Shown here piece after piece: positions 29,340 through 53,154 of a DNA stretch of 64,000 bases; the first letter of the stretch is position 1; the number at the start of each line of letters is the position of its first letter. The notes under the pieces are model-generated. The model was not told the DNA's origin. It ran no database searches and saw nothing but the letters and a program-made list of their open reading frames with translations. The translations under genes were made by a program, and so were the position numbers. The DNA is from Camelus dromedarius (Eukaryota), in the NCBI RefSeq assembly GCF_036321535.1, contig NC_087461.1, positions 2,728,001-2,792,000 of the forward strand, given 5' to 3'.

Positions 29340-29850
29340 AACAACTTCTCTCCAGGGTGGGGTAAACACTTGCATTCCTACCAGCACCGATCGGCATTTT
29401 CGCCAAGTACTCGGCTGGCCTTTGTTGTTGTTACCCGTGCGTAGTGGTATCTCATTTCGGTTTGAGTTTCTCTAATGATTAAAGATGTTGAGCATCTTTT
29501 CACGTGCTTATTTGCTAATCATATTCATCTGTAGTGAAGTGTCTGTTCAAACCTTTTGCCTGTTTTCTTTTTATTGGAGTCTAGTCAGTTTACCATGTTG
29601 TGTCAATCTCTGGTGTACAGCACGTTTCAGTCATACATATACATGCACATATTCCTTTTCATTTTCTTTTTCATTATAGGTTACAAGATACTGAATATAG
29701 TTCCCTGTGCTCTACAGAAGAAACTTCTTGTGTACCTACTGTACATACAGTAGTTAGCATCTGCAAATCTCAAACTCCCAATTTATCCCTTCCCACCCGT
29801 TCCCCCTGGTAACTTCAAGTTTCCTCTGTGAGTCTGTTTATTGCCTAATT
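29340..29850 (-). mobile_element. Antisense L1 ORF2 fragment followed by antisense artiodactyl L1 3' end
   Basis: gtagtggtatctcatt...ctaatgattaaagatgttgagcatcttttca; then cattataggttacaagatactgaatatagttccctgtgct. Confidence 0.85.
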
Positions 29851-30689
29851 TTTTATTGCTTCTACTTTTCCACCATTGAATTCTGTTGGCAAAGATGCTG
29901 ATGAACTTTAGTTGACTTGTTTTTATCCTCCTTTATTTTTCTGTTAGGTGTCTATGATGCCACCCTATAAAAATGGAGCTACCTTTGGCTTTAAATTTCA
30001 GAAAACTCAAGTAACAATGAAGTAATTGATAAGAAAATTTGATTACCTCACAGAATTCTGTCACACCCCTTCAGAGGTCCCAAAATGTGGAGTCTCCATA
30101 GTTGATTAATCACCAGATCATAAAACACTGCTTTCCATTTCCAATTTTACCATGTTCAGACTTTACACTTATCGAGGGTGCCTGTGTGTTTGGCAAGAGC
30201 AAAATCATACATGCCAATGTCCATCCGAAGTAGGGAGACCGTTTTTCACCACGCATCCTCCTTTGAGCAGCCCCTCATAACACAGGTCACATAACCACCT
30301 ATAAATGACTCAAAACCATGCAAGAAAAGCCCCTCACTTTCTATGGGTTCTTAAGCAGGTGAGATCCTGCTGGCCTTAGGCCCCATCCTCACATATAAGT
30401 CAATCAATCTGGAGGGAAATAGACGAATCAGCCCTTTCCAGACTCATGTAGAAAAGGGATGCACAGAGTTCTGCGAGCAAGGAGGGAAGGGGCAATGTTT
30501 GCTGGGTAGACAACCGATCAGATCTGCTGTACACTTTTTACTGGGTTTTCTGTTTCTAGCACTTATCCCTTAAGTGGCCATAATAATAGAGTTGTTTAAG
30601 GGCCTCTCTCCAGTCATTTTCTTCTCCCAACTTTTCACTCACAACTACGGTCTCTCTCCCAACTGCACGCTCTTGGCTTTGAAATCTAA

Positions 30690-30695
30690 TTTAAT
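30690..30695 (-). terminator. Candidate poly(A) signal ATTAAA for the MCTS1 retrogene
   Basis: First strong hexamer I see on the minus strand after the stop, about 295 nt downstream. Confidence 0.35.
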
Positions 30696-30767
30696 ACAGA
30701 GAGAGAATTTACCTGTTTGATCGGGTATCTGCTTGGACAGACAAGACAGCAAATCACTCGTCCGTAA

Positions 30768-30830
30768 ACACACTCACAGGCATACACTCACACAGACACA
30801 CACACACACACACAATGACACACACGCACA
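30768..30830. repeat. Imperfect (CA)n microsatellite
   Basis: Read directly. Confidence 0.9.
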
Positions 30831-30849
30831 CAGGCGGATTCGTTCCCAA

Positions 30850-30990
30850 GCTTTACTTTGTCTTTTGTCCCTTCGTTTAGCGTCCGCTGACTCGCTAACC
30901 ACGGGGGTGCTGCCTTCACGCTGTCACACACAGACACAAGCACAGGCCCAGCACTAGGTCCACCCTGGGCCCCAGCGCGTCTCCTGAGGC
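30850..30990 (-). other. MCTS1: Retrotransposed MCTS1 3'UTR plus decayed poly(A) tail
   Basis: TGAgcctcag...gtgtctgtgtgtgacagcgtgaag...gtggtta resembles the MCTS1 3'UTR as recalled, followed by A-rich aaacgaagggacaaaagacaaagtaaag. Confidence 0.65.
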
Positions 30991-31536
30991 TCACTTGTAC
31001 GTCTTCATGTGCCACAGCCCGTCGTTTAAGTAGTGGATGTTCTCAATCCCGATTCCTTTGTTGACCTTCTCGATTTCCTCCGCCGACATCTTCATGACCC
31101 CCACGCACAGCGCGTGCTGCTTTCCTTCTGCCATGATCGCGACCACCGTGTCCGCCGCGGCCGGGTAGAGCCTGGCGCCGGGGGAGGTCAGGCCCGGACA
31201 CATGATGTTCGCGCCGCTGAGCACGAACTTGATGGCGCCTTTGTCCACCTGCTGGCGCGGCAGGATGAAGGGGTACTTGTGCAGCAGCCTCAGCGTCGGG
31301 TAGAAGGGCCCCTCCCTCTGCCTGAAGAACAGCAGGTCCCCGTTGACCGTGAGGATCTCTATGTGCTCGTGGCACCGCACGATTTTGACCGGGTCTTTCT
31401 TGGGCATGATCTGGTTCAGCCACGGCTCGATACCTGGAAACTGCTCCACCAGCTGGTTCTTAATACCCTTAATCACTGACGACTTCAGCTGGATGCAGTT
31501 GGACACATTTTCTTTTTCATCAAATTTCTTGAACAT
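30991..31536 (-). CDS. MCTS1: Intact intronless MCTS1 retrogene (MCT-1 translation re-initiation/40S recycling factor, PUA domain), 181 aa
   Basis: [18 protein letters not shown]...[14 protein letters not shown]; 546 nt uninterrupted; about 8 conservative differences from human MCTS1 as recalled; no introns; UTR homology and tail remnant. Confidence 0.95.
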
Positions 31537-31539
31537 GAT

Positions 31540-32260
31540 CCAAGGCGAAGAGGGCGACGACAAGGAAGCGGCCGCAACCGGGGGGGAAAAATGAATCACC
31601 GCGAGCTCGGCGGAGGCGCTTACCGGAGGCGGGCCGGCGGGTCGCTCGGCGCGGCCGTCGCTAACCGGAAGTGAGGCGCGCTTTACGGCCGCCCGTCGTG
31701 CCGACTTCCGCCCCTCGGGGCCCGGCGGCGCGCCTGCCGGCGGGGTCGGGCTGCCGGCTCCGCCCCGGAGCGGGCGGGTAGCGGAGCGGGGCGGGGCTTG
31801 AGGAGGGAGCGGAGACACAGCCGTCACTCTCGCCGCAGGGAAAGAGACACGGAGGGGGCCTGAGTTTTAGTTTTATTACTGGGGAACCGGATCCGCATCC
31901 GCCCAAGTCCCCGAGCCGGAAACCGGGAGGGAATCCTGCCGCGTGGGCCCTCGCCCTCCGTGCGGTGGCCGCGAGGAGGCGAGCCCGGCGCGCCGCCCTC
32001 TGCCCCAGCTCGCCGCCTTCCCTGCGCTCACGCCCGCGGACGTCGCTCGGCGCCGGGCCCCGTCCTTGCAGACAGCTGCTGCCGGCCGCCTTCCGGTTTC
32101 TGTCCAGCGGCACGCGGGGGGCGGGGGGGAGGCATCGCCGGCTGGCGGGATGCAGACGCTGCAGGGTTTCAGTCCTTTTAAATATACTCAGACTTGGTCT
32201 GTAGGCCAGAATAGGGTCCCGTGGAGAACGGAGCGGCGCCTGAAAGGGAAGTGTGCTCTG
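31540..32260 (-). promoter_or_regulatory. CpG-island promoter of the retrogene, possibly bidirectional
   Basis: ETS ACCGGAAGTG 31664-31673, ACTTCCG 31704-31710, GC box GGGGCGGGGC 31788-31797; no upstream ATG on minus strand 31540-31830. Confidence 0.75.
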
Positions 32261-32284
32261 CTTTGTTGCGGCCGCTGCCTCTCT

Positions 32285-32445
32285 GGTCCTGTCTGTCTCT
32301 TCTATCAGTTACTGACGGCGTGTCGAAATCTCCATGATTGTGGATCTCTTTCCCTTTTCAGTTCTGTCAGCTTTGGATTTATGTATCTTGAAGCTCCGTT
32401 ATTAGGCCCACACTCCTTTAAGATTAATATGAAAGTCACCCTGTT
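32285..32445 (-). mobile_element. Old L1 ORF2 5' fragment, antisense
   Basis: gtcgaaatctccatgattgtggatctc...cagttctgtcagctttggatttatgtatcttgaagctccgttattagg. Confidence 0.7.
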
Positions 32446-32479
32446 AATTAGGATTTTATCTACCTAGGTTTTACTTGTC

Positions 32480-32605
32480 GTCCTAAGAAGTGTGAGGCCC
32501 GTGAGGGCAGGAGTTCTGTGTTTTACCTCTGTATTTTCTCACCTAGCATAAGGTCTGTTTCATACTACATACTGCACGCATAGTAAGTGATAAATGAATG
32601 AATGC
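32480..32605 (+). mobile_element. L2 3' end
   Basis: gtgagggcaggagttctgtgtttt...cctagcat...ataaatgaatgaatg. Confidence 0.7.
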
Positions 32606-32809
32606 TTCCTCTTCCCCAAGATACGGTCCCTTTCTTTCCCAGACAGTGCGGTGTGAAGAGAGTAAGGGCAAACCCCTGCTCTGTGGACACTTCTTTCCAA
32701 TAAACACACGCTTAACCTGGGAAGCCTGCACTGCAGCAGAATTGTAAAGTGCTGAATGTGTAACGGAAAGATAACGTGCATTTCCTCACTCTTGGGAGCT
32801 TATAGCACA

Positions 32810-33100
32810 TGAGAGTTTTATATATGATATGTATTTATATATGTATATATTATATATATAAACTCATTATTGTAAGGAATTGGCTCACATGGTTGTGGAG
32901 GCTGAGGAGTCCCAGCATCGTCAACAACCTGGAGACCCAGGAGATAAGGCCCGAGGCCCCGGGTGGTACCACTTTCAGTCAGTCCAAGTCAGAAGGCAGG
33001 TGAAGACCACTGTCCCAGCTCCAGGGCCATCAGGCAGGAGGAATTCCTTCTTACGCAGGGGAGAGTCAACCTTTTTGTTCTGGCTAGTTTATAAGCAGCT
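32810..33100. mobile_element. ERVL MLT2-like LTR fragment
   Basis: ttattgtaaggaattggctcacatggttgtggaggctgaggagtccca...ctggagacccagg...gaagaccactgtcccagctc. Confidence 0.75.
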
Positions 33101-36100
33101 AACCTTGTTATTCATGGAGTTTATGTGCTGAACTCTCAGAGGAAGATTCTCTTTCTTTGGTTCTTAAGGGATATCGTGCTGCTGTTCTTACGTGTGACGT
33201 CAGTGCTGTCCGAGCAGCACAAAGCAGATCGGGAAATTCAGCGGAGGGAAAGTCGTTACGGGCCAGAGTGACCAGGGTGGCCTGTCTGCAGACGCCTGCC
33301 GCACGATCAGAAGCGAGCTGACTTAGACCTGGCTGTCGGGGGCATGCCCAGGGGATTGTTTTGGTGCAGCCATTTTAGGCAAAGGACTCAAAAAAGTCAT
33401 CTGGATCTCCATAGCAATGGAATCTTTTTGAAGTTAACTATCAGTCTTATCTGAAATCATCCATCTTAGCCCACGAGGCACCTGTGTGCAGCTGCCATAA
33501 CAGGGACACTGAGTGCTAGTTTTTGCTTCTAAATTATTCAGTTAAGAAAATGAAAAAAAAACTCTTTTCAGACTTTCTAAAAACTCACCTTCTCTAAGAT
33601 CATGGGACCTGGTTCTCAAACTTTATACAAGAAGCTAGATCTTTGAGGCTGGCATACATTAGTATATGAAGAAATATGAGACCCAAGTGTTGCTTTAAAC
33701 ATACAAATATATTAAAACATTACCAACTTAATCTCGTTAAATAATTTTAAATCAATTCAAAATTGATTAACTATATAGATTTTAAAAAGAAGGAAAGTTA
33801 CAGAACAGAATTCATCTTTCAGGCCCCGGATGTACCAGTTGCTAAGTCTGACCCCCTTGGTAGCACTTTATTTCCTCATAAAATCAGAATAATACAGTGT
33901 ACACGCCACAAGGTATACGGTGTGATTATAAGGAATGAAAAACACAATACATAAGGAGCTTACCTGCTAGTAGGAGACTGTGTAAGTACATTTTAAAGTG
34001 TTTATTTATTTGCAAAACGCCCTTTATGCAGGTAGTTTTAAGATCTAAGATTATCGTGTACGTGTAGAATTTTTACAGAAAAGTATTGTAGCTTTGGATA
34101 ATTTGCTAAGTCAAATAGTCAAGAGATGCCAGAAATCCATTTTATGTCAGTAATCACTTGGGAGTATGTAATCGAGACATGGTGGTTATGTTGCAAAAAA
34201 TGAGGAAACCAAGTGAAAAAATTTCTCAGGTTCCTCGCATCTCCAAAATTCCCAGCGTGACCCCCACACCTTGGGTTGTACTGTTTCAAACGGTTCACCT
34301 TCAGGCAGCTTTGTCTGCATTTTGAGAAATGGCCACTAGAGGACAGGAGACCCAAACGATGAAGTCTTAGTGTTCACCAAGATCCTTAGAACGTTCCCAA
34401 CTTATAGGTAACTATTTTTTATCATACAATTGTCTTTCCTCAGTCGGGTTTCCTAAATAAACAAACCCATCTATCCAGAGCCACAAAACAGTTCCCAAGC
34501 TCAGATGAAGCACATTCTAAATAGTAAGCTACTTGATTTACAATTTGTGAGTTTTCTCTGTATAAATAATCACTTCTAAAATGATGTCTATTAAAACAAA
34601 AAGTTAGCCCCATATTTTCGGCCCTTTGAAAAGAAATATTAAAAGTGCCCTTTCTCACACTGCTTTAATGTATGAACCAGTTTTGAAAATTAAAAAAGTT
34701 CTGTGTGCTGTAAAAATAATCCCATGACATCCAAAATGTGTTTAGCTATGTCGTCTACCTCATCGCTCCGGTCCACGGGTGACACTTAAACACCACAGAA
34801 GTGTCCCCTGCACACTAAGCCTGTGGATGGACGGGTAGAAGACGTGTGGTCGCCCAGAGGAAAGGGCCCCACGTGGCAGGCGTGGGCTGGGGGGGGGGCC
34901 CCAGGGTCTTAGGGGCTCTCCTTCCCAAGGCACACCCTACCAGAGGGTGAGCCCTTGCCTGGGAGTACTGAACCCTCCCTTCTCCTCTGGACTCTGTCCC
35001 CCTTTTGGACCCTTGCCAGTCCCTGACATCCTGGCCTCAGTTTCCCGATTGTCCCAGGAGGAGATGGACACGAAATGGCATGAGCCCCGCCGCATGTGGA
35101 CATGGCCCAGGCTCCTGGCCCACAGGCCCTCGGGGTGTAGGACGCGCTCAGGGGCGCAGGGACTTCCTCCCACACGCGGACTCAGCACGGGGCAGCCCGC
35201 CTCACATCCAAGTCCACCACCTGGCGCGCACACAGGCCCACGGGCGGCGCGGGCCAGAGGCCTCACCTTGCCACGCACGTGCTCGATGCACCGAGGGCTC
35301 CCAGCTGGCCATTACTGCACGTCCCCAACGGCCTCTGAGCCCCACAGGCCACCCCACTCCAGTCAGACTGGCTGGAGACGTGGGGCCTGAAAGTCGCGGA
35401 ACACCCCCCCACATACACATCTGCTGTCCTGGCCCCCAGACTCCTCCGCGGAGGCCAGCGCGGTGCACGGCTGCGGCCGGAAGGCTTGCAGGGGACAGCA
35501 GATGACGAGTCTGCGCGGGAGACGTTCAGGCTGCCCCTTCTCCCTCCTCCCCCTTCACCCTTCCTCCCTGTCCTCAGGGGGACAGCTCCCCCCTGGCCCT
35601 GGCTGGTGGGGACCCCTAGAGGAGGTGGGTGAGTGTTGGGGGTAATTACTGTTATTAGGGAGCCCCTATCCTGGCACTCAGTGAGGTCACCCCATTTCAT
35701 AGATGAACCATGGCACCAACGCCCAGAGTCACTCAGCTCTCAGGGACAAGCCCAGACCATCGGAGACTGAGAGGTCACAACAGAAGCCTCCCTGTGTCGG
35801 GGGTGTGACTGGCCCCCCCGTCAGTCTAACCTCAAAGGCTGTGCTATGCAGCCTTGGAGGTGAGTCCATCGTGGACGGGGGACAAGGGGAGGGCACCGCA
35901 GGCTAGGGGCTGTGAGGACGCAAGGGCTTGGAGGGGCTCCTGAGGGAGAAGGGCTCCAGGAAGACGAGAGTCAGGCTGAGGGGTGCACACGGGACTGGTC
36001 CTCGGGACCAGGTCACGCAGCTCTGAATGCCAGGCCAGGCGTCGGGGCCGCTGCAGGCTGGTGGGCAGGAGACACGATGCAGCAGTCTTACTAGAGCCAC

Positions 36101-36179
36101 AGCATCCTAGAGGCAGAGCTTGTGGGCACGTTATCCACCCCAGTCACAGCACGGACCCCAGGGACCACCCGGGTTGGAG

Positions 36180-37150
36180 AAGCCTGCTTCGTGCCCTCGT
36201 GTGCACGGGGGAGGCTGCTGTGTCTCCTCGCAGGGCTGGATGCGCTGCCTGGACGTGCCAGGTACCTTTCAGGAGAGGTCTGTGCCCAGAGAGGGCTGGT
36301 TGAGGGGCCCCAGGGGACTCCCCACCCCCACCCCCATCCAGGTCACCAGGGCTCTTGTCCATGTTGCTGTCGACCCCCTCCAGACTGACAGGGTTGGAGC
36401 TGTGTCACCTACCCGCTAGAACAGGACAGCGAGGAGCTGTGCCTGCAGACCCGAGACACGGTGCTTGTGGCTGTACGCACTGGGAAGAAGGAGATGCTGC
36501 TGGAGGCGAACTGATGCTGTCGACTTGGGGGGACTCTGACGAGGTGAACTCCCAGAACAGTGGGGGATGGGAAGGTCAGCAGAAGCCCTGGACTCTGCTG
36601 GGCACCCCCATCCTAGGGGGCAGCACTGGGGCTTCTAGAGGTTGGAGCTTCTTGGCTCCTTTTGTGGGTGCAGATTGGGGAACCCAGGAGGGGCTGCAGA
36701 AGTGCCATCAAGAGAAGAGGCGGGTGTTCAGCTTCCTTCCTTGGCCATCAGAGGACTCGAGGACAAAGCTCACATTGATCTTCACTTCAGAGCCTGAGAT
36801 GCTGGCTGAGTCCCCGCTGAACTCATCGGGAAAGCCCCCTCTGCGGAGGTAGGGATCCTGTGGTCCTGGGGACTTGCAGCTGCTGCTGGTCCTGGGCTCT
36901 TTGTTGGGACCCTTGTGGCTGAGTGGAATGCTGGCTTTGCAGTGGTCAGAGCCGCCGGGAGTGGTGCTCTGGGGTGCCCGTGGGCAGAGGTGGCAGTGAC
37001 CCACCCGCAGCAAGGCACGAGGGAAGAACACAGAGGACGGTGGGGGTGGGCAGGGCTCCACGCCCGCCGCAGAACCCCTGGCAACACCAAGCTAGTCTTC
37101 AGATCCCAGAGAGCAGAAGTCCCCCACGGCTGTGAGCAGTCCATGGGCGG
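36180..37150 (-). repeat. Array unit D: diverged paralog of 39280-40100 (start region plus upstream flank), no ATG
   Basis: Collinear shared words with unit A: gcctgc(c)ttcgtg.cct..cgtgtgca, agaggtctg, catgttgctgtc, caggacagcgagg, ctcccagaacag, cttggctc....tgtgggtgca, cttcagagc. Confidence 0.8.
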
Positions 37151-37329
37151 CAGGTCAGCCCGTAGACCACCCGCTTCTTACACATGACACTGTGTATATA
37201 CACACAGCAAAAGAATTTCAGGGTAAAAGTGGGATCTGGCAGTTGGGGCCGAAAATGCCCAGGGGCCCGGCTAGTCCAGTCCGTAAGTGCTTCCCTGCCG
37301 GCCTGACCACCCAGACCCTGGGGAGTGAG

Positions 37330-38050
37330 GCTCGGTGCCTGCAGGGCCGGGGCTGGTTAGACGATGGCCCCGGTGAGCCAGAAAAAGAGGAGGAAAGTAA
37401 ACCTAGGTAGCGGGAGGAAGGAAGCAGTGAGGATAGAGCGAGACAAATGGGCAGAAAGCAAACGAGCCTTCGAGCGAAGCAAGGAAAACAAGTTCCTTCT
37501 TGAAAAGATTTACAAAATTGGCCCATATTTTCCTAAATTAATTAAAGAGAAGACTCAAATTACAAAAGCATAAGTGACCATGGGACATTATTAATGACTC
37601 TACATAAAGGAAAAGAATTATAAAAACAAAGTGCCCTGAACAATGGCAGGCTGAGAAACTGGTTAGGCTCGAGGAAGTGGATAAACTCCTAGCGCCAGCA
37701 AACTAGCAAAACCGACTCCAGAAGAAATGGAAACTGGACAGGGGCCGTCGTAAGTAACAAGACTGAGTCAGTTACCAGAAACTTCTCAACAAAGAAAAGC
37801 AGAGAATCAGAGAACCTCCCTGCTGAATTATCCCAAATACGTAAGAAGATGTGACACCAGTCACTCTCGGATCCTTGCAACAAACTACAAGAGGAAGGAG
37901 AACTCGGTCTGCGATGCCAGCGGTCCTCCCTGAGACGGAAGACAAGGGACCTCCCGAGGACAGAAAACTGCAGGCCAAAGTCCAGTATGAACAGAAATGC
38001 AAAAACCCCAGACAAGATGCTAGCAAACAGAACTGAGCGGTACGCTGAAT
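37330..38050 (+). mobile_element. Old L1 ORF2 fragment, GC-shifted
   Basis: aaagagaagactcaaattacaaaa...gaagtggataaactcctag...ccagaagaaatggaaact...aacaaagaaaagc...caagaggaagga. Confidence 0.8.
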
Positions 38051-38169
38051 GCACGCTGCATCACCGTCAAGGCAGCTGACCCAAGGACGGCCGCACTGCT
38101 GCCAACGGGGCAGTCAGCGTAGCACACCACGCCGATGGAATGAAGAATAAAACTGCACGGGCGTCTCAG

Positions 38170-38567
38170 CCGGGGTGAAGAAGGTGCGTGGCACAATACA
38201 GGCACCCTTCCACCTTGAAAACATGCTCAGTGAAAGAAATCCTTCCCCAAAGGCCAGTATTATATGGCACCTCATGTACCAAAATCCTGAGTAGGATGTA
38301 AATGAACACCCAGGCAGCAGAGTCATGGTTGCCGGGGAGCAGGGGCAGTGGGGAGCGGCTGCTTAACAGGCCGGGTGTGGGGTGATGGGAACGCTCTGGA
38401 ACTAGGTAGCAGGGGTGGCACCGTGCACTGTGAGTGGAGTTAATGCCACTGAGCTGTGCAATTCCAACTGTTTTAAAAGGTAGATTTAATTAACATGAAT
38501 CTTACGACATACAGGTACCCAGACCGCATATGAGAAAAAGAAACAGAAGCTACAAAAACAGTAAAAA
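38170..38567 (+). mobile_element. L1MB-like 3' end with A-rich tail, abutting unit A
   Basis: ttgaaaacatgctcagtgaaagaa...gttaatgccactgagctgtgca... Confidence 0.8.
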
Positions 38568-38569
38568 GG

Positions 38570-39328
38570 GCGCCCCACCCCCGGCTAGGGCCGGGAAGGC
38601 TGCGCCTGGTGAGCTGCACCTGGTGAGCTGCACCGAACGCCGCGCGGAGCCCGGCTCCGGTTCTGGAGCTGGTGTTGGCCGCGGGGCTCCTGCGGCCTTG
38701 CTGCCGAGGCTCCGCCAGCCCGCGCTCGGGAGTAGGTGTCGGGGCTGAGGCTCCAGGTCAGTTGGTGGTTTTGGAACCGGCTCCAGCTCAGACACTTGCA
38801 GTGGCTCTGCCTAGGTCGCGGGCGCGGGCAGGTGGCGGCCCTGGGGCTGGCGGAGGTGGCGCTCGAGCTCCTCTAGCCCTGCTGTTGGCGCGAGAGCGGC
38901 TGTTGCAGCGGCTGTTGGCTCTGGGCCTGACTCTTCCTCTGAAACGGGTGTGGGTTCCAGTTCTGTCCTGGTCCTTTTCTGATCCTGGAGTCTGTCGGGA
39001 GCTGCTCCGAGCGCCAGCCGTGGCGACGTGCCTGCTGGGCTCGGTGCAGGAGGCCGCAAGACAGTGGCCCGCGCCCCACGGCTGATGGCAGAGCTCGCAC
39101 TGGAGCGGGCCCCACTCCTGGCGGGGACGCTGGAGCTGAGATCGGACCTGTTCCTAGCTCTGGAGCTGGTGCAGGGGGGCGGTGCTGTCGCCGGCTCCTC
39201 CTGGGGCCCGGCGTTGGTCTAGCTCTGTCCCTGGCTCTAAATCTGCCGCTGGTTTTGGAGCTGACCGAGCTCCAGAGGTGGCCTGCCTTCGTGACCTCCC
39301 GTGTGCAGTAGGGGACCGTGGTGGCCAT
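38570..39328 (-). pseudogene. Array unit A: frameshifted remnant of a small Ser/Arg/Pro/Ala-rich ORF (MATTVPYCTREV...)
   Basis: ATG at 39328; xCC-AGx codon periodicity in three successive frames giving RFRARDRAR, SSRARNRSDLSSS, RANSRCNSRSRANSRARG; family not recognised. Confidence 0.5.
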
Positions 39329-39648
39329 CCGCCTCCTCCCGGGGCTGAGGGGGACACCTGGCAAATCCAGAGCTGACTCCTTTTACAGTAGAGGTCTGCA
39401 CTCAGAGGGGTCTGGGTGAGTGGGCCATGGGGACACTCCCAGCCCCCAGGATGCTCGTGGGCATGTTGCTGTCACCCACGTCCAGGACAGCGAGGTGGCC
39501 GTGGTGTAGGGGGGGTGACAGGGGAGAAGGGCTGGTGGAGGCCGGCTTCTGCCTGAAGAACCCAGGGAGATGGGGATACTGCCTCCCAGAACAGGGGGGG
39601 CAGCCTGAGCGACACAGTCTTGAACTCCGCAGACCCACCCCCCGCCCA

Positions 39649-40652
39649 GGCCCGCTTCTAGCTCTGGGGGATTCTAGAAACTCTGTTCAGGACCCAGGGG
39701 TACTTGGCTCTTTCTGTGGGTGCACAGCGGGAGACCTGGTGCCAGGAAGGGTGGGGCTGTCGGGGAAACTTCATATCCTGGCCAGTAGGAGCCCCAGGAA
39801 AAGCTGGCCCCCATCCCCTCCCCTTCAGAGCTGGAGAAGCGGCCGAGCACGTGAGGGACTCCTCAGGACCACCCTGTTGCTGGGGACGGCACACCTGAGC
39901 CAGTCTGAGGACAGGGAGTGAGAACGGCCCCCGGCCCTCGGCTCCACGCTGGTGCCTTCGCGGCTGGGTGGGAAGCCATGCCTGTGGGCACCGGGGGCTC
40001 GGCCCTGGATGTAGGGGGCCTTGAGAAAGTGTGCAGAAGGCAGCACCCTAGCAAGTGTCAGCTGCTCTTCCAAGACACCTATAATGTGAGTGGGCGAGGA
40101 GAGGCCGGCCAGCCTGGTGAAGGGTGGGCATTGGGGCTGCAGTGGGGGGGCTGCAGGGAGAATCTGACCCCTGGGCTGGCTGGTTGGGCAGAAGATGCCC
40201 AGCTGGTGTGGGACACCGCAGTCCATAGAGGCTTCGCTTCCTGGCCAGCAGGACCTGGGGGACGCAGCCCTGTGCTGGCCGGCACTCGGGACCCATCAGA
40301 AGGTGTCTTTTGCAATCTTGAGCCCCTCGCCAGACCTTCCTCCCCAGGGTGAAAGTCCACGTCTTCAGGACAGAGTCGCAGTTGGCAGGGGGGTTCCTGG
40401 CGCAGCACAGGTCAGGGATCGTTAGCTCTGGTCGGGGTTGGCGGGATGGAGGAACGGCCAGCTGTGGGCCACAGGCCAGGGAGGAGGAAGTGCACAGAAA
40501 CAAAGAGGAGCCGGTGGTGGGGTCGGTGGGGAGGAGGGGGTGGGGGGGGCCCTTCCTGGCGCCAGGGCTCCTGCTCTGCACCCACAGAAAGGGCCAAGTG
40601 TCCCCGGCTCCGGGACAGAGTCTCTGGAATCCCCCAGAGCTAGAAGCAGGCC
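39649..40652. repeat. Inverted repeat: arms 39649-39751 and 40550-40652
   Basis: Hand alignment: 103 bp, ungapped, 14 mismatches (86%); weaker similarity continues inward. Confidence 0.9.
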
Positions 40653-40699
40653 CGGGTGCCTGGCCGAGTCCCTGTGTCTGTACTAATGCACAGAATTTC

Positions 40700-46179: not shown

Positions 46180-46600
46180 GGGCTCCAGATGCTGCGCGCC
46201 TCGGGCGAGTTGCTAGGAGACTGGGTGTGAGGCCTGGTCTTGCACCGCCCGGCCCGTGAGCACATCCACTCCCCCCGCCCTGCCTCCGGCTCCGGCACCC
46301 ACGCCGCCGACCAGTCGGGCCGCCGGCTGCCAATCGAGGTGCCCGCCGCCCGTGCTGCCAGCTAATCCAGGCGTCCACCCCAGCGGAGTCCCTCGGGATT
46401 CTCGGGGCAGCCGCAGACGCGATCTGCAGCATGGAGAAGGTACCTGTGCTGGGCCTGGGCACCTGGAAGCTGAGGTGGCCTCGTGCTGGGCAAGGGGCAG
46501 CGTCGTTTCTGGACACGCCCTGACGTGAAGGGGCCGCCTACCTGGACACCCGCAGGGACACCCCCAGGACACATGCGGCAGCGTCCGCAGGCCCATGGGT
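46180..46600 (+). promoter_or_regulatory. CpG island/promoter of AKR1E2 pseudogene
   Basis: CpG-rich, GC boxes and a CCAAT about 100 bp before the ATG at 46431. Confidence 0.7.
46431..46469 (+). pseudogene. AKR1E2: AKR1E2 exon 1 (MEKVPVLGLGTWK); donor reads CTGAGG instead of GTGAGG
   Basis: 39-nt exon, +1 G>C. Confidence 0.85.
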
Positions 46601-47594
46601 CCTTCTACTGTGTTTGGAAGATGAAATTTTTAGATATCAGATTTTCTGAAAATGGAGATTGTCTTTACCGCATTTCATACTAAGGCCCAAGCATAATTAT
46701 TCAGAAATAAGGTCTGGGAAAGCCCAGAAGAAAAGGTTGTCACTCTTGGGTAAGGGCAGAAAAATTAACGGTCACTCGGCAGGCCAGCCCAGCAGCCCAG
46801 TGAAAGATGGAGAAATGTCTGTGTCAAAAGACAAGGAAGCTCTGTCATTGCCATCTTGGCTTTAAAAAGAAACTGTCTTCTTCCCGGTGTAAAAACCTGA
46901 TAGTGGAAGCACTTTGGACCTTTCTCTACTTTGGATTTTTAAATTCCTGTCAGTGATTTAGACACAGCACTCACTAAAAAGCCTTTCAGTTTGCTTTAAA
47001 AGAAAACAAAATAGCCTTTGATAAAAACTCACTGTAAGAAGTCACATAGGAAATTTTTGGATGATAGAAACTAGAATGATCAACCCTGCTCATCAAAATA
47101 TTCTTTAAATTCTTTCTTCTATCCGGTTATCAACTCTTAAAGCCAGAGGCGTAGTTCATTGTGGTTCTCAGCATCCGGGACAGGCATTAGGCAGCCGCTC
47201 AGTTAGCACTCATGGGTTTACCTGTTTTGCGTTTCTTGTTTCATTTCCTTTTTTCTAGTCCTTAAGCTTCAGATTGTTTCTTTCTGAGCCACTTATCCCG
47301 ACTGGGCCTTCCAGTGCAATGGCCATTCCTGTTCTGTTCCTTATTTTAAAGTAAAGGGACACTTCTGATATGGCCACACTTAGGATGGTGTTTAGCCTAG
47401 GTTTTGGGTTTTTTTCTTGATATTTTTGTTGTGTTTATTTTAAATATATTATCAGGTTAAAGTAGAGCTGCACTGGGAGTGAGGTGGCCAGGGTCACAGA
47501 TGCTGCCAGGACATTACCGCAGACAAGCGGCTTGTGAAGGAAAGGTATTGTGTTCTCTGGACTGGCTGGCTTTGCACGTGGAAAGGGCATTTTT

Positions 47595-48200
47595 GCAGCA
47601 TTTTATTTGAAACTTTCTGTTAACAGTGTTACATACAAAAAGTGCACACATAAGAATAGGGCTTGACTGGTTCTCATAAACTGAGCCTGGCTCTGTGACC
47701 AGCATCAGGAAACAAGCCGGACCAGCCCCCCAGAAGACCCCACCACGCTCCTTTCTAGTCCCCCCTCCCTCTCAAAGCAGCCACTCTTCTGATTTCCAGC
47801 AGCATCGATGAGCTGCAGAGCTTTGTCTGGATAACGCGGAACAGTTGTACCAGGTTGCTGTCACGTACTTAACACCACACAGCACGTTGTGCCCTCATTT
47901 GTGCCCGGCTCCTTCACTCAGCGTGGCACCCGTTAGACTCCTCCTCGTGGGTCATCAGCTCCTCCCTCCGTGTCCTGCTCCCCGTGGGAACCTCCCAAGG
48001 GCAGCTGTCCATCCTGTCCCTGATGGGCGCTTGGGCAGTTCGCCATCTGGGGATATAAAGACCGAGCGTCACATCCTGCTCTTTCTTATGATTCAGCTTG
48101 TTAACTGAGGTATGGCAGCTTCGGAGAAGCACGTCGGTCTTGACGGGCAAAGCCCAGCTGCTTCCAGCAGTGAGCGCGCTCGAGAACCCAGAGCCCAGAG
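47595..48200 (-). mobile_element. Old L1 (L1MB/ME-like) 3' region, antisense, GC-shifted
   Basis: catacaaaaagtgcacacataag...ctccttcactcagc...tccatcctgtccctgatgggcgcttgggcagtt. Confidence 0.75.
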
Positions 48201-48494
48201 CAGGAAACAGAGCGTCGTCCAGTTCCGGAAGCTGGGGGGTCTGTCTCCTGAGCAGGGATTCGGACCCTCGGGAACGCCCCTCCCAGGGCTTCTCCATCGG
48301 GGGTTCTCCTGACGGCCGTGCCCAGCGTGTCCCTAGGTCTCCCTGATTCCCTCGAACGAGTGTTCCTCAGGCCCACTTCTGACCTGGGTCGTATATGAAA
48401 ATTCAGAGAGTGTGGAGGGACAGGGACCTGCTGTCCCGCCTCTCAGAGTCTCCACTGGAGTCACCAGGCTCGTCTGTGCCGCATGAGTCCCCAG

Positions 48495-48625
48495 CTTCCC
48501 TCATCCACCCATGTACTGAGCACCTTCTGTATGCCCAGCTTGTTCTAGGTGTTGGGGAGACATCCGTGAACAAAACAGAAACAGACCAGAATCCCTGCCT
48601 GCGTGGAGCTCACATCATAGGGACA
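48495..48625 (-). mobile_element. L2 3' end
   Basis: catgtactgagcaccttctgtatgccc...gtgaacaaaacag...atccctgcctgcgtggagctcacat. Confidence 0.75.
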
Positions 48626-48860
48626 AAAGATAGAAAATACAGTATATAAGATGTCCGCTCATGATACACACGTGTCAGTGACGGAGGCGCGAGGGCCACG
48701 GTCCTTACCTGCAGTGCTGCCCCAGCGCTCGCGACGTGGCTGTTCTCAGAGGGACGGGTCCCCTCGCGCTTCAGTGATGCGGCCACGGCAGGAACAGAGG
48801 ACCTGTTTTCGGGTGGACTGCTTGTCAGCTTTCCTTGGTGAGCTGTGACCCTCTTTGTAG

Positions 48861-48958
48861 ATCGAGTGCCACCCATACCTTACTCAGAAGAATCTGATCA
48901 GTTTTTGCCAATCCAGAAAAGTGTCCATGACCGCTTACCGGCCCCTTGGCAGCCCCAG
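48861..48958 (+). pseudogene. AKR1E2: AKR1E2 exon 6 ([32 protein letters not shown]), intact with AG/GT
   Basis: 98 nt, canonical splice sites. Confidence 0.9.
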
Positions 48959-49439
48959 GTAGGGACATGCCTCCGGTTTAACTTGGGTGCTTACGAGGGG
49001 TTTAATGAAGACGTGGGCAAGGTGTGGAGAGACCACAGGCACCCCCTGTCAGCACTCCTGGGCCCTTGGGCTGAGGGAGGGGCTGGTGCTGGGAGCCACT
49101 CTGGGGAGCTGCCCCAAGGAGGCAGTGACCATTTAAGGGACACTGGGACCAGCTGGAAGTGGCTGCTTTGCTGAGCTCGTGACCAGTACATCTCGTGACC
49201 TCTCCTGGACCTCTGAAGAATCAAAATTCATCTTTCCCAGAAGTGGCACTGTGTCCTCTGCTCCCTACATCAGCCAACGGGCCACCACCCACTCGGCCAC
49301 CCAGACCAGACAGTCCATCAGCAAGATCCACTGAGTGTTCTGCCGGGAGCTCAGAATCTGTCTCTCGATCTCTGCTCCCGCCGTCCGCCTTATTAAGATT
49401 CTCAGGATATGGGAGCAGCCTCTGTAACCCTGCCACATT

Positions 49440-49950
49440 TTCCCAGTTCCAGTCCACTGTCCACGTGGCAGCAGAAGGGGACCATTCAGTGTGACCATGT
49501 CGCCTTCTTGCTTAAAAGTCCTTTGCTTCTGGCCTAGAAGCCCCGGCTGAGCTGGCCTCTGCCTACTCCTGGCCTCTTTTCTTCCTGCAGACACTCTGCG
49601 CCAATCATTTGAAACTCCCTGGGTTCCTGGAATAAAACATGTTCTTTCTAGTCTCCTCACCCTTGTGCATACTGTTCTCTTTACCTAGAAATCTTGTTAT
49701 TATCTTTTTCTGGAATCTGGTTAACACCGGTTTCTAATGTAAGGCACAATTCAGCACCACCTCCTCCAGGAAGCCCTCCTGTCTCCCCTGACTCATGTTC
49801 TGTCCACAGCCCTCGTCACGCTATCTTGTCCTTATTTACTTCCCACTCTTCTCCACTCGTCAGAGCTCACCGAGTGCAGGGACCGATCTAACTCATGACT
49901 CTCTGCCTAGCCCCTCGCTCAGCGCCTGGCACATACGGGAGGCCCGGGAA
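49440..49950 (+). mobile_element. L2
   Basis: ctgtccacgtggcagcagaaggg...ccttcttgcttaaaagtcc...cacctcctccaggaagccctcc...cagcgcctggcacata. Confidence 0.75.
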
Positions 49951-50789
49951 GAGCTGAAATTATTTGATTGCTATTATCTGTGTGTTTCCGCGTGAAATGG
50001 GGCACATGTGCTTGAACTGGGCAGCAGCAGGGGGAGTTCCGGGAAGGTTGGGTCCTATCCCACAGCTGAGCTTGAGGCAGAGGAACCCCTTTGGGGAGTG
50101 GGTGGTAGGAGCCACCCCAGAGAGGGGACCGGGGCCCACGGGCAGATGAAGTGGGCTCTGCCTATGTCCCTGAGCACATGCTGAGGGCTGTTGGTGGCCC
50201 AGGGCTTGAAACAGTAACTTCGTCATAAACGTTTGCTGGGAAGTGGCTCTCCAGGGTGAAGGGGGCCTGTCCCCTGCTGGACGGAGGCTGAGGGACGGCT
50301 TGGTCACCATCTTCAGACTCTCTGCACTGAAGATTCACAGTCTCAACTTTTTCTTGGTATTTGAGGTTTTCTGAAATTGTCGTCATCAACAAGAACCGAT
50401 GATCCATGTGCAAGACTCTGTGCCCACAGCATGAGCTAGGAGGTCAGAGAGCCTGTGAATGTCAGAGGCGCCAAAGCACAGAGAGCACACTGCCTCACAC
50501 GCCCCGACGTTGCCACCTGGCTCTTGTGGAAAAGCGCCAAATACACGAGCAAAGCGCTCTCTCTCGCTGTCTCCATGGAAGTGTTGGCAGTGGTTTCCCC
50601 AGATGGTAGCATCTGAGTGACAGCTTTTCTGTATCATTTCAGTTTCCTCTGCTGAGCAAGTAGTATCGTGGCCAGACACAAATAAATCTAGATTTTTGCA
50701 TTTGGGGATAGTTGTGGTTGTGGTTTTTTCTCTAAAGAAGGAAACACAATCGTTTGACCGCGTAGCCCTGCCCTGTCTATGCTCTCCAG

Positions 50790-50848
50790 TGAGGGACCGC
50801 CCCGTGGTCCAGATGATGGCGCGGAGGCAAGGGAAGTCTTCAGCTCAG
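50790..50848 (+). pseudogene. AKR1E2: AKR1E2 exon 7 remnant (..RPVVQMMARRQGKSSAQ), 59 nt, frameshifting deletion
   Basis: AG/GT intact; 14 nt shorter than the 73-nt exon implied by the human protein. Confidence 0.8.
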
Positions 50849-51131
50849 GTAGGCGGGGGCTGCTTCCTTGGTAAAACGTCCGGCTGCCTGGGGACAGGAC
50901 GTGTTCATGAGTTCTCCTTACGGCGTCTGTAGGTCCTCTGAGCTTCTCCTGGACCTGCTCAGGAAATGCCAGTTTTGTTTCTAAAGGACTTTAGAATGAA
51001 AGAACTTGTAATAAAAGGTGCCCTGGCTTTTGGACTTTGCTGCACAATGAAAAGTGAGTGGTAGGGGAAAGGACTGAGCTCTGACTCTGGGTGACCCCGT
51101 GTCTGATACTGGACTTTGTTCCCCCCTGCAG

Positions 51132-51215
51132 ATTTTGATCTGATTTCAGATCCAGAGGAATGTGATAGTGATTCCCAAATCCATCAACCTACAGCGGATT
51201 CTTGAGAATATCCAG
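51132..51215 (+). pseudogene. AKR1E2: AKR1E2 exon 8 (ILI*FQIQRNVIVIPKSINLQRILENIQ): TGA at 51141-51143, donor GAAAGT
   Basis: 84 nt; CGA>TGA; +2 T>A. Confidence 0.9.
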
Positions 51216-52276
51216 GAAAGTGTGTCCTCCATTTGCATCATCGGGTTTGGAATCCGCTGTTAGCTCCAGGCAGGGGTGGGGTGACCTCTGCAGCCGGTGA
51301 CCTCTGCAGCCAGCGGCCCCGCCCTCTGTGGCTTTGACACTGCAAGGGGTGGGAGGACGGGAGTGGAGACTGGCCCTCCCAGCCTGGGAGCTGGCGAACT
51401 GGACTGAATGGGACAGGGAGAGGTGATGAGGGGACAGGGGTGCAGCCAGAGCTCTCGGGGCTGCCCGCCCAGCCAGCTACCTGTCCCCCGCCCCCAGGGC
51501 CGCCCAGTAATGCCGCACCCAGGCTGCCTTAGCCCTGACGTGTCCAGGCTCTTCCAGAGCTGTTCACGCTCTCCCCTTCACCCAGACTATGCCCGGCCCC
51601 AGCTCTCCCTCCAGGCAGAACTTTAGTTGTCACTGAGTCTCTAGACTTGGGGTAGAGGACCCACTGTGGGAAGAGGCCAGGCAATGCTCTGTCCCCTCCC
51701 GGGCTCTGCTCCTCCCCCTGGCCCCCAGCAACTCAGCTGTGGGTTCAGGGCTGGCTCTTGGGGTGGAAAGGTCTCACTGCAGGCTAGCGCCTTATAGTCC
51801 AGGAGTGTTGGGGGGGGGCAGCTTAGAATACTGCTTTCGAAGGAACAGAAATAAAAATGACACTGTGTACAGATACTATGAGTGTTAATGGTCCTGGGGA
51901 GCAAGTATCTCCCTCGCTGGTGGCGGAAGGAAGAAATGTTGTAGCTGTTTGTGTGGTTTTTTTTGGGGGGGGGGGTGTTGTTTTTGTTTCTTGTTTGTTT
52001 TTTGCGTGTGTTGGGGAAAGTTCTGTTCTGGAACGTCCTGTGCACTGCAGGCCGGGGGCAGCACACACCCATCCCTGCACGCGTTTCCTGAGCAGCCGGG
52101 CTGAGCCCGCAGGGCGGTCGGAGCCCACGTGCCCTTGGGGCCCCAGAGGACGTTCAGGGGAAGGTCAGGGTCACAGGAAGCTCTGTCCCTACAGGCCCGA
52201 AGCGCTCTGTGGCCGGCCTAACTCAACTAAAAGCCACTGAACTAAACTTCCTGTAAATGTTTCCTTCCGGTTCCAG

Positions 52277-52359
52277 GTGTTTGATTTCGGATTATCAGAG
52301 GAGGACGTGACCGACCTGCTCGGCCTGGACCGGAGTGTCCGCTTGGCCGCGTTCCCCAT
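52277..52359 (+). pseudogene. AKR1E2: AKR1E2 exon 9 (VFDFGLSEEDVTDLLGLDRSVRLAAFP)
   Basis: 83 nt, AG/GT intact. Confidence 0.9.
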
Positions 52360-52630
52360 GTAAACACCGCTCTTCCCCTCCTTGCAAAGCGGAGGGAGCG
52401 GCGTCGGCGCCCCAGGCTGGGCCCTGCACAGGCGTTTCCTAGGTACCTCTGGGGGCCAGTTAAACCTCCTCCTCGTCATTCTCCCCTGTCCGTGGACGGG
52501 CCACTTTGGAGGCCAATCTAAAGACTAAACCAGGCCACAAGGGAGTTCAAAACTACAGAAATGTATCTTTTTAATGCTTCTGTTGAAAACAATAACCCTT
52601 CTCTGCTTCTATTTTTGACTTGCTTTTCAG

Positions 52631-52673
52631 AGCTGGAAGTCACAAGGACTATCCCTTCAGAGCAGAGCGCTGA
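52631..52673 (+). pseudogene. AKR1E2: AKR1E2 exon 10 (AGSHKDYPFRAER*)
   Basis: 43 nt after ttttcag. Confidence 0.85.
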
Positions 52674-53154
52674 GGCCCGACTCGGCCCAGACGTCCTCTC
52701 CCAGGCGCAGGCAGCTCTGGCCGGGGGCGGGGTGGGGATGTGGGGGGTCCCGCCTGCAGCCGGAGTGCCCGGAGGAAGCCGGGAGCCGCTGCGGGCTGTT
52801 TTTTTTCTCCCTGGGGTTCATCTGGGCTTTTTGGTCTTATGCCCCTAATGCTCAGTAATCGTGCTGCTTGGTAACAGCAGTGCCAAACCCCAAGCCTGCC
52901 ATGAAGTTCCAGCATTCGTTTTCATAGAATGGGGTGTGTTTCAGCCTAACCACTGGTTTTCATTGTCCCGACTAAACTGGTCCTGTTTCTATTCGCACTT
53001 CCTCCAGTCTGCTCTGGGCAGAATTTCGTCTTCAGGTTACACAATAAACGGTAGGAGGGCCTACAGCTGGAGGCACCTCCAAATTCTTTCGATGGTGGAT
53101 TAAAAGGAATCCAAAAGGGACCTGGAGATGTGGAGCTGCTACCAATTTCCTAAT

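Follow-up and report, generated by a model that had tools for sequence, protein, structure and literature searches.

Functional retrogenes that have left the X chromosome, such as PGK2, are thought to compensate for meiotic sex-chromosome inactivation. MCTS1 is X-linked (PMC1796624), and its retrocopy MCTS2 is reported to be present in primates and rodents and absent from the H13 gene of dog and cow (Wood et al., PMC1796624); McCole et al. were unable to refine this dating. Mouse Mcts2 rises at pachytene while Mcts1 falls (PMC3107425), and it is broadly expressed (PMC3107425, PMC11790910). Binding to DENR has been shown for the mouse MCTS2 protein, as has rescue of re-initiation in vitro (PMC11790910). 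Opinion is currently divided on whether MCTS2 functions as a back-up for MCTS1 (Bohlen 2023 versus PMC11790910).

We analyzed a stretch of 64,000 nucleotides from Camelus dromedarius (contig NC_087461.1, positions 2,728,001 to 2,792,000), referred to here as the window, which contains an intact coding sequence for a 181-residue MCTS1 paralog on the minus strand at 30991–31536, with the ATG at 31536 and the TGA at 30993–30991. The parental coding structure was rebuilt from three X-type MCTS1 loci of other mammals (L025–L027), standing in for that of the camel, and comprises six coding exons, the first of which contributes only 11 nt. The window ORF crosses all five parental junctions and contains none of the parent’s five introns, confirming the original prediction of a complete intronless ORF at this position.

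The encoded protein has the domain order and length of the MCTS1/Tma20 family, with an N-terminal Pre-PUA domain (PF17832, DUF1947; 4.4e-29) followed by a PUA domain (PF01472; 2e-18) within ~181 residues. It can be aligned with human MCTS1 over its full length (PDB: 5ons_A; E 3.7e-120) and is 96% identical to MCTS1. This alignment yields precisely the eight conservative changes that had been listed for it (T19S, I30V, E67D, H94R, K122R, V128A, I131V, and D154E), and the residues said to be retained, H58, T81, F104, and S118, are indeed unchanged. The role assigned to H58, that of a zinc site with DENR, does not hold. In the crystal, His58 completes the DENR zinc site only by way of a symmetry mate, and DENR binding persists in the H58A mutant of MCTS1 (PMC6013234), so the retention of H58 is no evidence for DENR binding. 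Six camelid assemblies encode an identical protein, and one of them is ~6% diverged in DNA from Old World camels.

The reading frame remains open upstream of the ATG, where the GC-rich, stop-poor sequence at 31537–31827 (minus strand) gives rise to a 278-residue ORF starting with GTG. We rejected this ORF as a real extension, along with N-terminally extended gene models from bats and bovids (225–300 residues, including models of 300 and 228), as there is no conserved upstream ATG; these models exploit the open leader or splice past the stop, and are probably annotation artefacts.

A copy of the whole processed MCTS1 mRNA, ~1002 bp in length and comprising leader, CDS, 3′UTR, and a poly(A) remnant, occupies ~30857–31858 on the minus strand. 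A blastn search with the spliced parent mRNA matches 30896–31671, and MAFFT alignment extends the parental homology to approximately −322 relative to the ATG and, on the other side, to the parent’s cleavage site. The parent-derived leader spans 322 nt (31537–31858, minus strand), and a scan for upstream ATGs in it returned none. Alignment locates three motifs on the minus strand of this leader: a GC box (AAGYCCCGCCC) at 31783–31799, a GGAAGT ETS-like box at 31697–31714, and GCCGTAAAGCGCG...CTTCCGG at 31657–31689. The GC box, the GGAAGT box, GCCGTAAAGCGCG, and CTTCCGG are common to the upstream region of the parents, lemur MCTS2, and every laurasiatherian copy.

The 3′UTR-derived segment, defined by alignment to parents and orthologs, covers 115 nt (30876–30990, minus strand). 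Its homology reaches the parent’s AATAAA...GATGCTAAAA cleavage site, where the parental genomic sequence diverges and the retrocopy enters an A-tract. In the window, this tract is the decayed poly(A) CGAAGGGACAAAAGACAAA (30857–30875, minus strand), positioned exactly at the parent’s cleavage site, and at the equivalent position ~25 A are preserved in rhino and ~18 A in Rousettus. The UTR homology and the decayed tail noted in the original prediction are therefore both present, and the absence of parental introns, the poly(A) at the cleavage site, and the restriction of homology to the mRNA are the traits of a processed (L1-mediated) retrogene. In the camelid copies, the parental AATAAA has been destroyed through a 7-nt deletion and substitutions, while the rhino and Eptesicus copies retain ...GAATAAATTCA(A/G)CAGATGCTA... 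in the region of the parental polyadenylation signal. The first candidate replacement signal downstream of the lost one is an ATTAAA at 30690–30695 (minus strand), found by motif scan.

Alignment of orthologs, parents, and MCTS2 also delimits the insertion site. The 3′ target-site flank GTAAAGCTTGGGAACGAATCC (30836–30856, minus strand) is kept in camelid, ruminant, suid, cetacean, rhino, and bat copies, is degraded but recognizable in shrew, and has no counterpart in the parent or in MCTS2. The bases that follow the A-tract, GTAAAGCTTGGGAACGA..., are common to the laurasiatherian copies, again degraded in shrew, and are missing from the parent and from MCTS2. The 5′ flank AATAAAACTAAAACTCAGG (31859–31877, minus strand) may contain a remnant of a target-site duplication. 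The candidate duplication itself, AAAAGACA, can be read on either side of the insertion in rhino and in part in cetacean, but has eroded in camel. A (CA/TG)n microsatellite is located just past the insertion at 30760–30835, and recurs at that position in most of the laurasiatherian orthologs that were examined, although it is not evident in shrew. Host-derived sequence ~320 nt upstream of the 5′ end of the retrocopy contains the element GTATATTTAAAAGGACTGAAACC (32165–32190, minus strand), which could belong to the promoter. This element is conserved across camelids, pig, cetaceans, rhino, and bat, with greater divergence in sheep.

The window is 100% identical to CM070335.1 (assembly GCA_036321535.1), a 29-Mb chromosome on which it lies ~2.76 Mb from one end, and the autosomal location proposed for the retrogene holds. 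About 15 kb away, and head-to-head with the retrogene, is an aldo-keto-reductase exon-1-like sequence (..MEKVPVLGLGTWK..; 46410–46472, plus strand), a weak tblastn match to a Suncus AKR exon (E 0.003). When the Suncus AKR exons were searched against 46410–52700 of the window, this exon-1-like sequence alone was matched. Aldo_ket_red genes adjoin the retrogene in Camelus ferus and in Suncus, and the Suncus copy stands head-to-head with such a gene at a distance of 2.7 kb and shares a downstream collinear block with the window. The neighbor can thus be assigned to the aldo-keto reductases at the family level; the specific name, AKR1E2, is the reading of the original prediction. The uninserted site would be expected to resemble …AAAAGACA joined directly to AAAGTAAAG… upstream of AKR1E2.

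No host gene around the retrogene was called in five of the six camelid assemblies or in other species. A sheep gene model spans 39 kb downstream of the retrogene, and one Camelus ferus model with Aldo_ket_red matches runs upstream on the same strand as the retrogene. The interval between the retrogene and the AKR exon contains a GC-rich block (36–46 kb) with two 107-bp direct repeats, 86% identical, at 39645–39751 and 40550–40656. This block appears shortened in the ~6%-diverged camelid, where the alignment jumps from 35334 to 40170.

We found orthologous copies in at least seven orders. The flanks on both sides are collinear in the second camelid lineage, sheep, Eptesicus, two rhinos, eight cetaceans, warthog, and hippo, while the shrew copy adjoins the same reductase gene. 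All orthologs examined in relatives are intact. In addition, R94 is present in every laurasiatherian copy (camelids, pig, warthog, sheep, goat, hippo, cetaceans, rhinos, eight bat genera, and shrew). These shared features show that the insertion predates the divergence of camels, pigs, ruminants, whales, rhinos, bats, and shrews. The retrogene is not camelid-specific and is at least as old as crown Laurasiatheria, a firm lower bound on its age. A Vulpes lagopus gene annotated as ‘MCTS1-like’ (L028, 10001–10570) was rejected as the carnivore ortholog because it adjoins ENOX1.

Sliding-window statistics define a CpG island of ~1.6 kb at 30700–32300 (GC 0.55–0.81, CpG o/e 0.7–1.45), which covers the whole retrocopy and extends ~400 bp past its 5′ end. 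The CpG promoter of the original prediction is thus verified as an island, and its use as a promoter is inferred. Within the CDS, CpG o/e is 0.88 in camel and 0.76–0.91 among the copies, compared with 0.05–0.22 in the parent CDSs. Between the camel CDS and a parent CDS (L027) there are 113 nucleotide differences, of which 106 are AT-to-GC, none GC-to-AT, and seven of other types; AT-to-GC changes are involved in six of the eight amino-acid replacements. The CDS became part of the CpG island through this one-directional recoding, with the protein held nearly constant. GC3 is 0.33 in the parent CDSs, 0.40 in MCTS2 and the Eptesicus copy, 0.55 in cetaceans, 0.75 in pig, rhino, and sheep, 0.85 in camelids, 0.96 in Suncus, and 0.98 in hippo. 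The two lineages with the highest GC3, hippo and shrew, have the most amino-acid changes, a pattern that GC-biased gene conversion would predict, and this process may be driving amino-acid change in both copies.

The protein is kept under very strong purifying selection. Pairwise dN/dS between camel and sheep, warthog, cetaceans, or rhinos is 0.013–0.029, with dS of 0.73–1.19, and falls to 0.004 between cetacean and warthog. Higher values are seen for camel versus Suncus (0.09) and for hippo versus sheep, warthog, and camel (0.07–0.18). The hippo and shrew copies are also the faster ones (dN ~0.07–0.11), with 34 differences from the camel protein in hippo (L029, 10001–10546) and 18 in Suncus (L012, 10001–10546), both in intact frames. 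A codon maximum-likelihood fit over ten orthologs (GY+F3X4, species tree) gives an omega of 0.010, with a log-likelihood of −1853.99 compared with −2329.35 at omega = 1 (2ΔlnL ~950). Near-saturated dS and uneven base composition across the orthologs make the exact omega approximate, but the conclusion does not depend on it: dN/dS is ~0.01 and not near 1, as the prediction of purifying selection demanded.

With a probability of roughly 0.88, we interpret the locus as a functional protein-coding retrogene, derived from a near-full-length MCTS1 mRNA, inserted by an AKR gene before the laurasiatherian orders split, and separate from MCTS2. An alternative identity as the MCTS2 ortholog, with the HM13 exons simply missed, would account for the common parent, the intronless 181-residue ORF, the CpG island, and the ~79% nucleotide identity between the window CDS and that of lemur MCTS2. 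However, lemur MCTS2 is located inside the Peptidase_A22B (HM13) gene, and when this lemur HM13/MCTS2 locus, extended by 10 kb to either side, was compared with the window, the retrocopy (30897–31574) was the only part that matched. The window is free of HM13 sequence, as had been noted, and in place of the HM13/H13-intron location typical of MCTS2 orthologs the retrogene has an AKR neighbor and unmatched flanks. Parental homology stops at ~−290 in lemur MCTS2 versus ~−322/−350 in the laurasiatherian copies, and the flank beyond the poly(A) of lemur MCTS2 is unrelated to that of the window. In protein alignments, K75 marks MCTS2 sequences (E75K in lemur and apparently also in rodent-like MCTS2), whereas E75 is retained in the window copy and in every other laurasiatherian one; conversely, the parents and MCTS2 keep H94. 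A nucleotide maximum-likelihood tree, whose internal order is distorted by base composition, unites the laurasiatherian copies (support 90/96; 92% of bootstrap trees) and sets MCTS2 apart from them. The flank comparison refutes identity with MCTS2, to which we assign almost no credence. Flanks, 5′ boundary, diagnostic residues, and tree all agree with the independence originally proposed, as does synteny, which is collinear across laurasiatherians (including sheep, cetaceans, warthog, and rhinos) and not with MCTS2/HM13. By these sequence comparisons, the retrogene is an independent MCTS1 retrogene that arose through an insertion separate from that of primate and rodent MCTS2. An insertion older than Boreoeutheria, or older still, followed by loss in Euarchontoglires once MCTS2 existed, would turn the retrogene into a replaced gene rather than a laurasiatherian innovation. 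Its age has a lower bound only, with the gene present in all laurasiatherian orders sampled, and the dS between parent and retrogene (0.39 for Eptesicus) is similar to that between parent and MCTS2 (0.31). Among the matches listed, however, no euarchontogliran or afrotherian MCTS-like protein carries R94, and we consider this older origin unlikely.

The remaining alternatives concern what has been conserved. High protein identity to MCTS1 (96%) is also what a young processed pseudogene would show, or an ORF kept intact through gene conversion with the parent rather than by selection. Neither is compatible with orthologs in at least seven orders at dS of 0.7–1.2, with 106 of 113 differences being AT-to-GC, the opposite of homogenization, or with an omega of 0.010; the ortholog spread, the one-directional differences, and the omega refute this reading, whose probability we place near zero. 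The conserved object could instead be a CpG-island regulatory element or a non-coding transcript in which the open frame is incidental, as the island exceeds the retrocopy and host sequence further upstream can be aligned between orders. Yet synonymous sites have been almost completely turned over while the amino acids stayed fixed, which makes non-coding constraint highly improbable, since it would not spare non-synonymous sites alone. The three codon positions, which such constraint would leave with equal substitution rates, show the opposite. The functional protein-coding retrogene is the interpretation that we carry forward.

Indirect evidence for transcription comes from 14 sequencing runs of probable RNA (type guessed) in seven studies, which contain 77–89% of the sampled 31-mers of 30800–31900. 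None of these 14 runs is among those listed for 29600–36000, where the lowest listed share is 0.28. The parent differs at ~20% of sites and so is unable to supply these 31-mers. This run pattern fits what would be expected of a discrete transcript of ~1 kb. Logan contigs with the Rousettus and shrew proteins were rejected as RNA evidence, as they are collinear, unspliced, and repeat-bounded, and thus genomic.

We propose that reverse transcription of a near full-length MCTS1 mRNA placed a copy upstream of an aldo-keto reductase gene (AKR1E2 according to the original prediction). This insertion would have occurred before the laurasiatherian orders diverged and separately from the MCTS2 event in the HM13 intron of Euarchontoglires. 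Transcription could start from the retrogene’s own CpG island, helped by the GC-box and ETS-like motifs of the parental leader. Based on its 96% identity to MCTS1 and the analogy with mouse MCTS2, the protein is predicted to pair with DENR and to function, as MCTS1 and MCTS2 do, in 40S recycling and re-initiation. The autosomal copy may have been retained because the X-linked parent is silenced in male meiosis. As MCTS2 is reported to be absent from dog and cow H13 (PMC1796624), the retrogene is probably the only autosomal MCTS1 copy in camels. Its description as a ‘second’ functional X-to-autosome copy is appropriate for mammals as a whole, but not within camels, where there is probably only one.

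The retrogene shares an X-linked parent and a CpG island with the class of imprinted X-derived retrogenes formed by Mcts2, Nap1l5, Inpp5f_v2, and U2af1-rs1. This raises the speculative scenario that two boreoeutherian superorders each independently fixed an autosomal MCTS1 retrogene, with the laurasiatherian one converging on MCTS2 regulation, its CpG island acting as a maternally methylated germline DMR with paternal expression, and with no obvious host gene. We regard such convergence as a long shot; if true, it would contradict the rule that places imprinted X-derived retrogenes within introns of hosts transcribed in oocytes. In either case, the locus could serve as a natural control in studies of imprinting, with the parent and the carried-over leader of MCTS2 but an apparently intergenic rather than intronic setting. 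Two papers on imprinting in pig do not mention the retrogene. Pig HM13 is listed among genes with parent-of-origin imbalance (PMC12969872), despite the reported absence of MCTS2 from laurasiatherian HM13.

Full-text literature searches returned no paper that describes an MCTS1 retrogene in Laurasiatheria, separates it from MCTS2, or addresses its imprinting in livestock. The original prediction had left open whether the gene was already annotated, and NCBI auto-annotation does label these genes ‘MCTS1-like’ in many species. Here we recognize it as an out-of-X functional retrogene that parallels MCTS2, with direct relevance to the dispute over MCTS2 redundancy. The maintenance of an independent MCTS1 retrogene at an omega of ~0.01 through approximately the whole of laurasiatherian history argues strongly, on comparative grounds, that mammals require an autosomal copy of MCTS1. 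In practical terms, work on MCTS1 in pig, cattle, sheep, camel, or bat that relies on knock-outs, antibodies, or expression measurements must consider a paralog that is 96% identical. The 106:0 AT-to-GC recoding at constant protein further points to CpG-island formation or GC-biased gene conversion acting on the retrogene.

Compared with known systems, the window protein resembles MCTS1 (MCT-1/Tma20), the DENR partner, in its two domains, its length, T81, S118, and F104, and its 96% identity. The gene itself differs from MCTS1 in being autosomal and single-exon, with a CDS that lies in a CpG island, a GC3 of 0.85 versus 0.33, and eight conservative replacements. A processed copy of the same parent also exists next to ENOX1 in canids, likewise laurasiatherian; it occupies another locus, retains H94, and, at 82% identity and with a changed C-terminus, seems to be in decay. 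Like PGK2 and other out-of-X retrogenes, the window gene moved from the X chromosome to an autosome, has been under long-term purifying selection, and has an origin that parallels another lineage’s copy. For the window gene, activity in germ cells is a conjecture of the original prediction.

The parallel with MCTS2 is the most extensive. Both genes derive from X-linked MCTS1, encode an intronless 181-residue ORF under strong purifying selection, and carry a parental leader with GC-box and ETS-like motifs in a CpG-island context. They differ in site, which for MCTS2 is an HM13 intron in Euarchontoglires and for the window gene is apparently intergenic, beside an AKR gene, in Laurasiatheria. MCTS2 is further distinguished by E75K and by its other 5′ end and flanks, the window gene by H94R. 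Base composition also separates them, with a GC3 of 0.55–0.98 in the laurasiatherian copies, except for Eptesicus (0.40), compared with ~0.40 in MCTS2.
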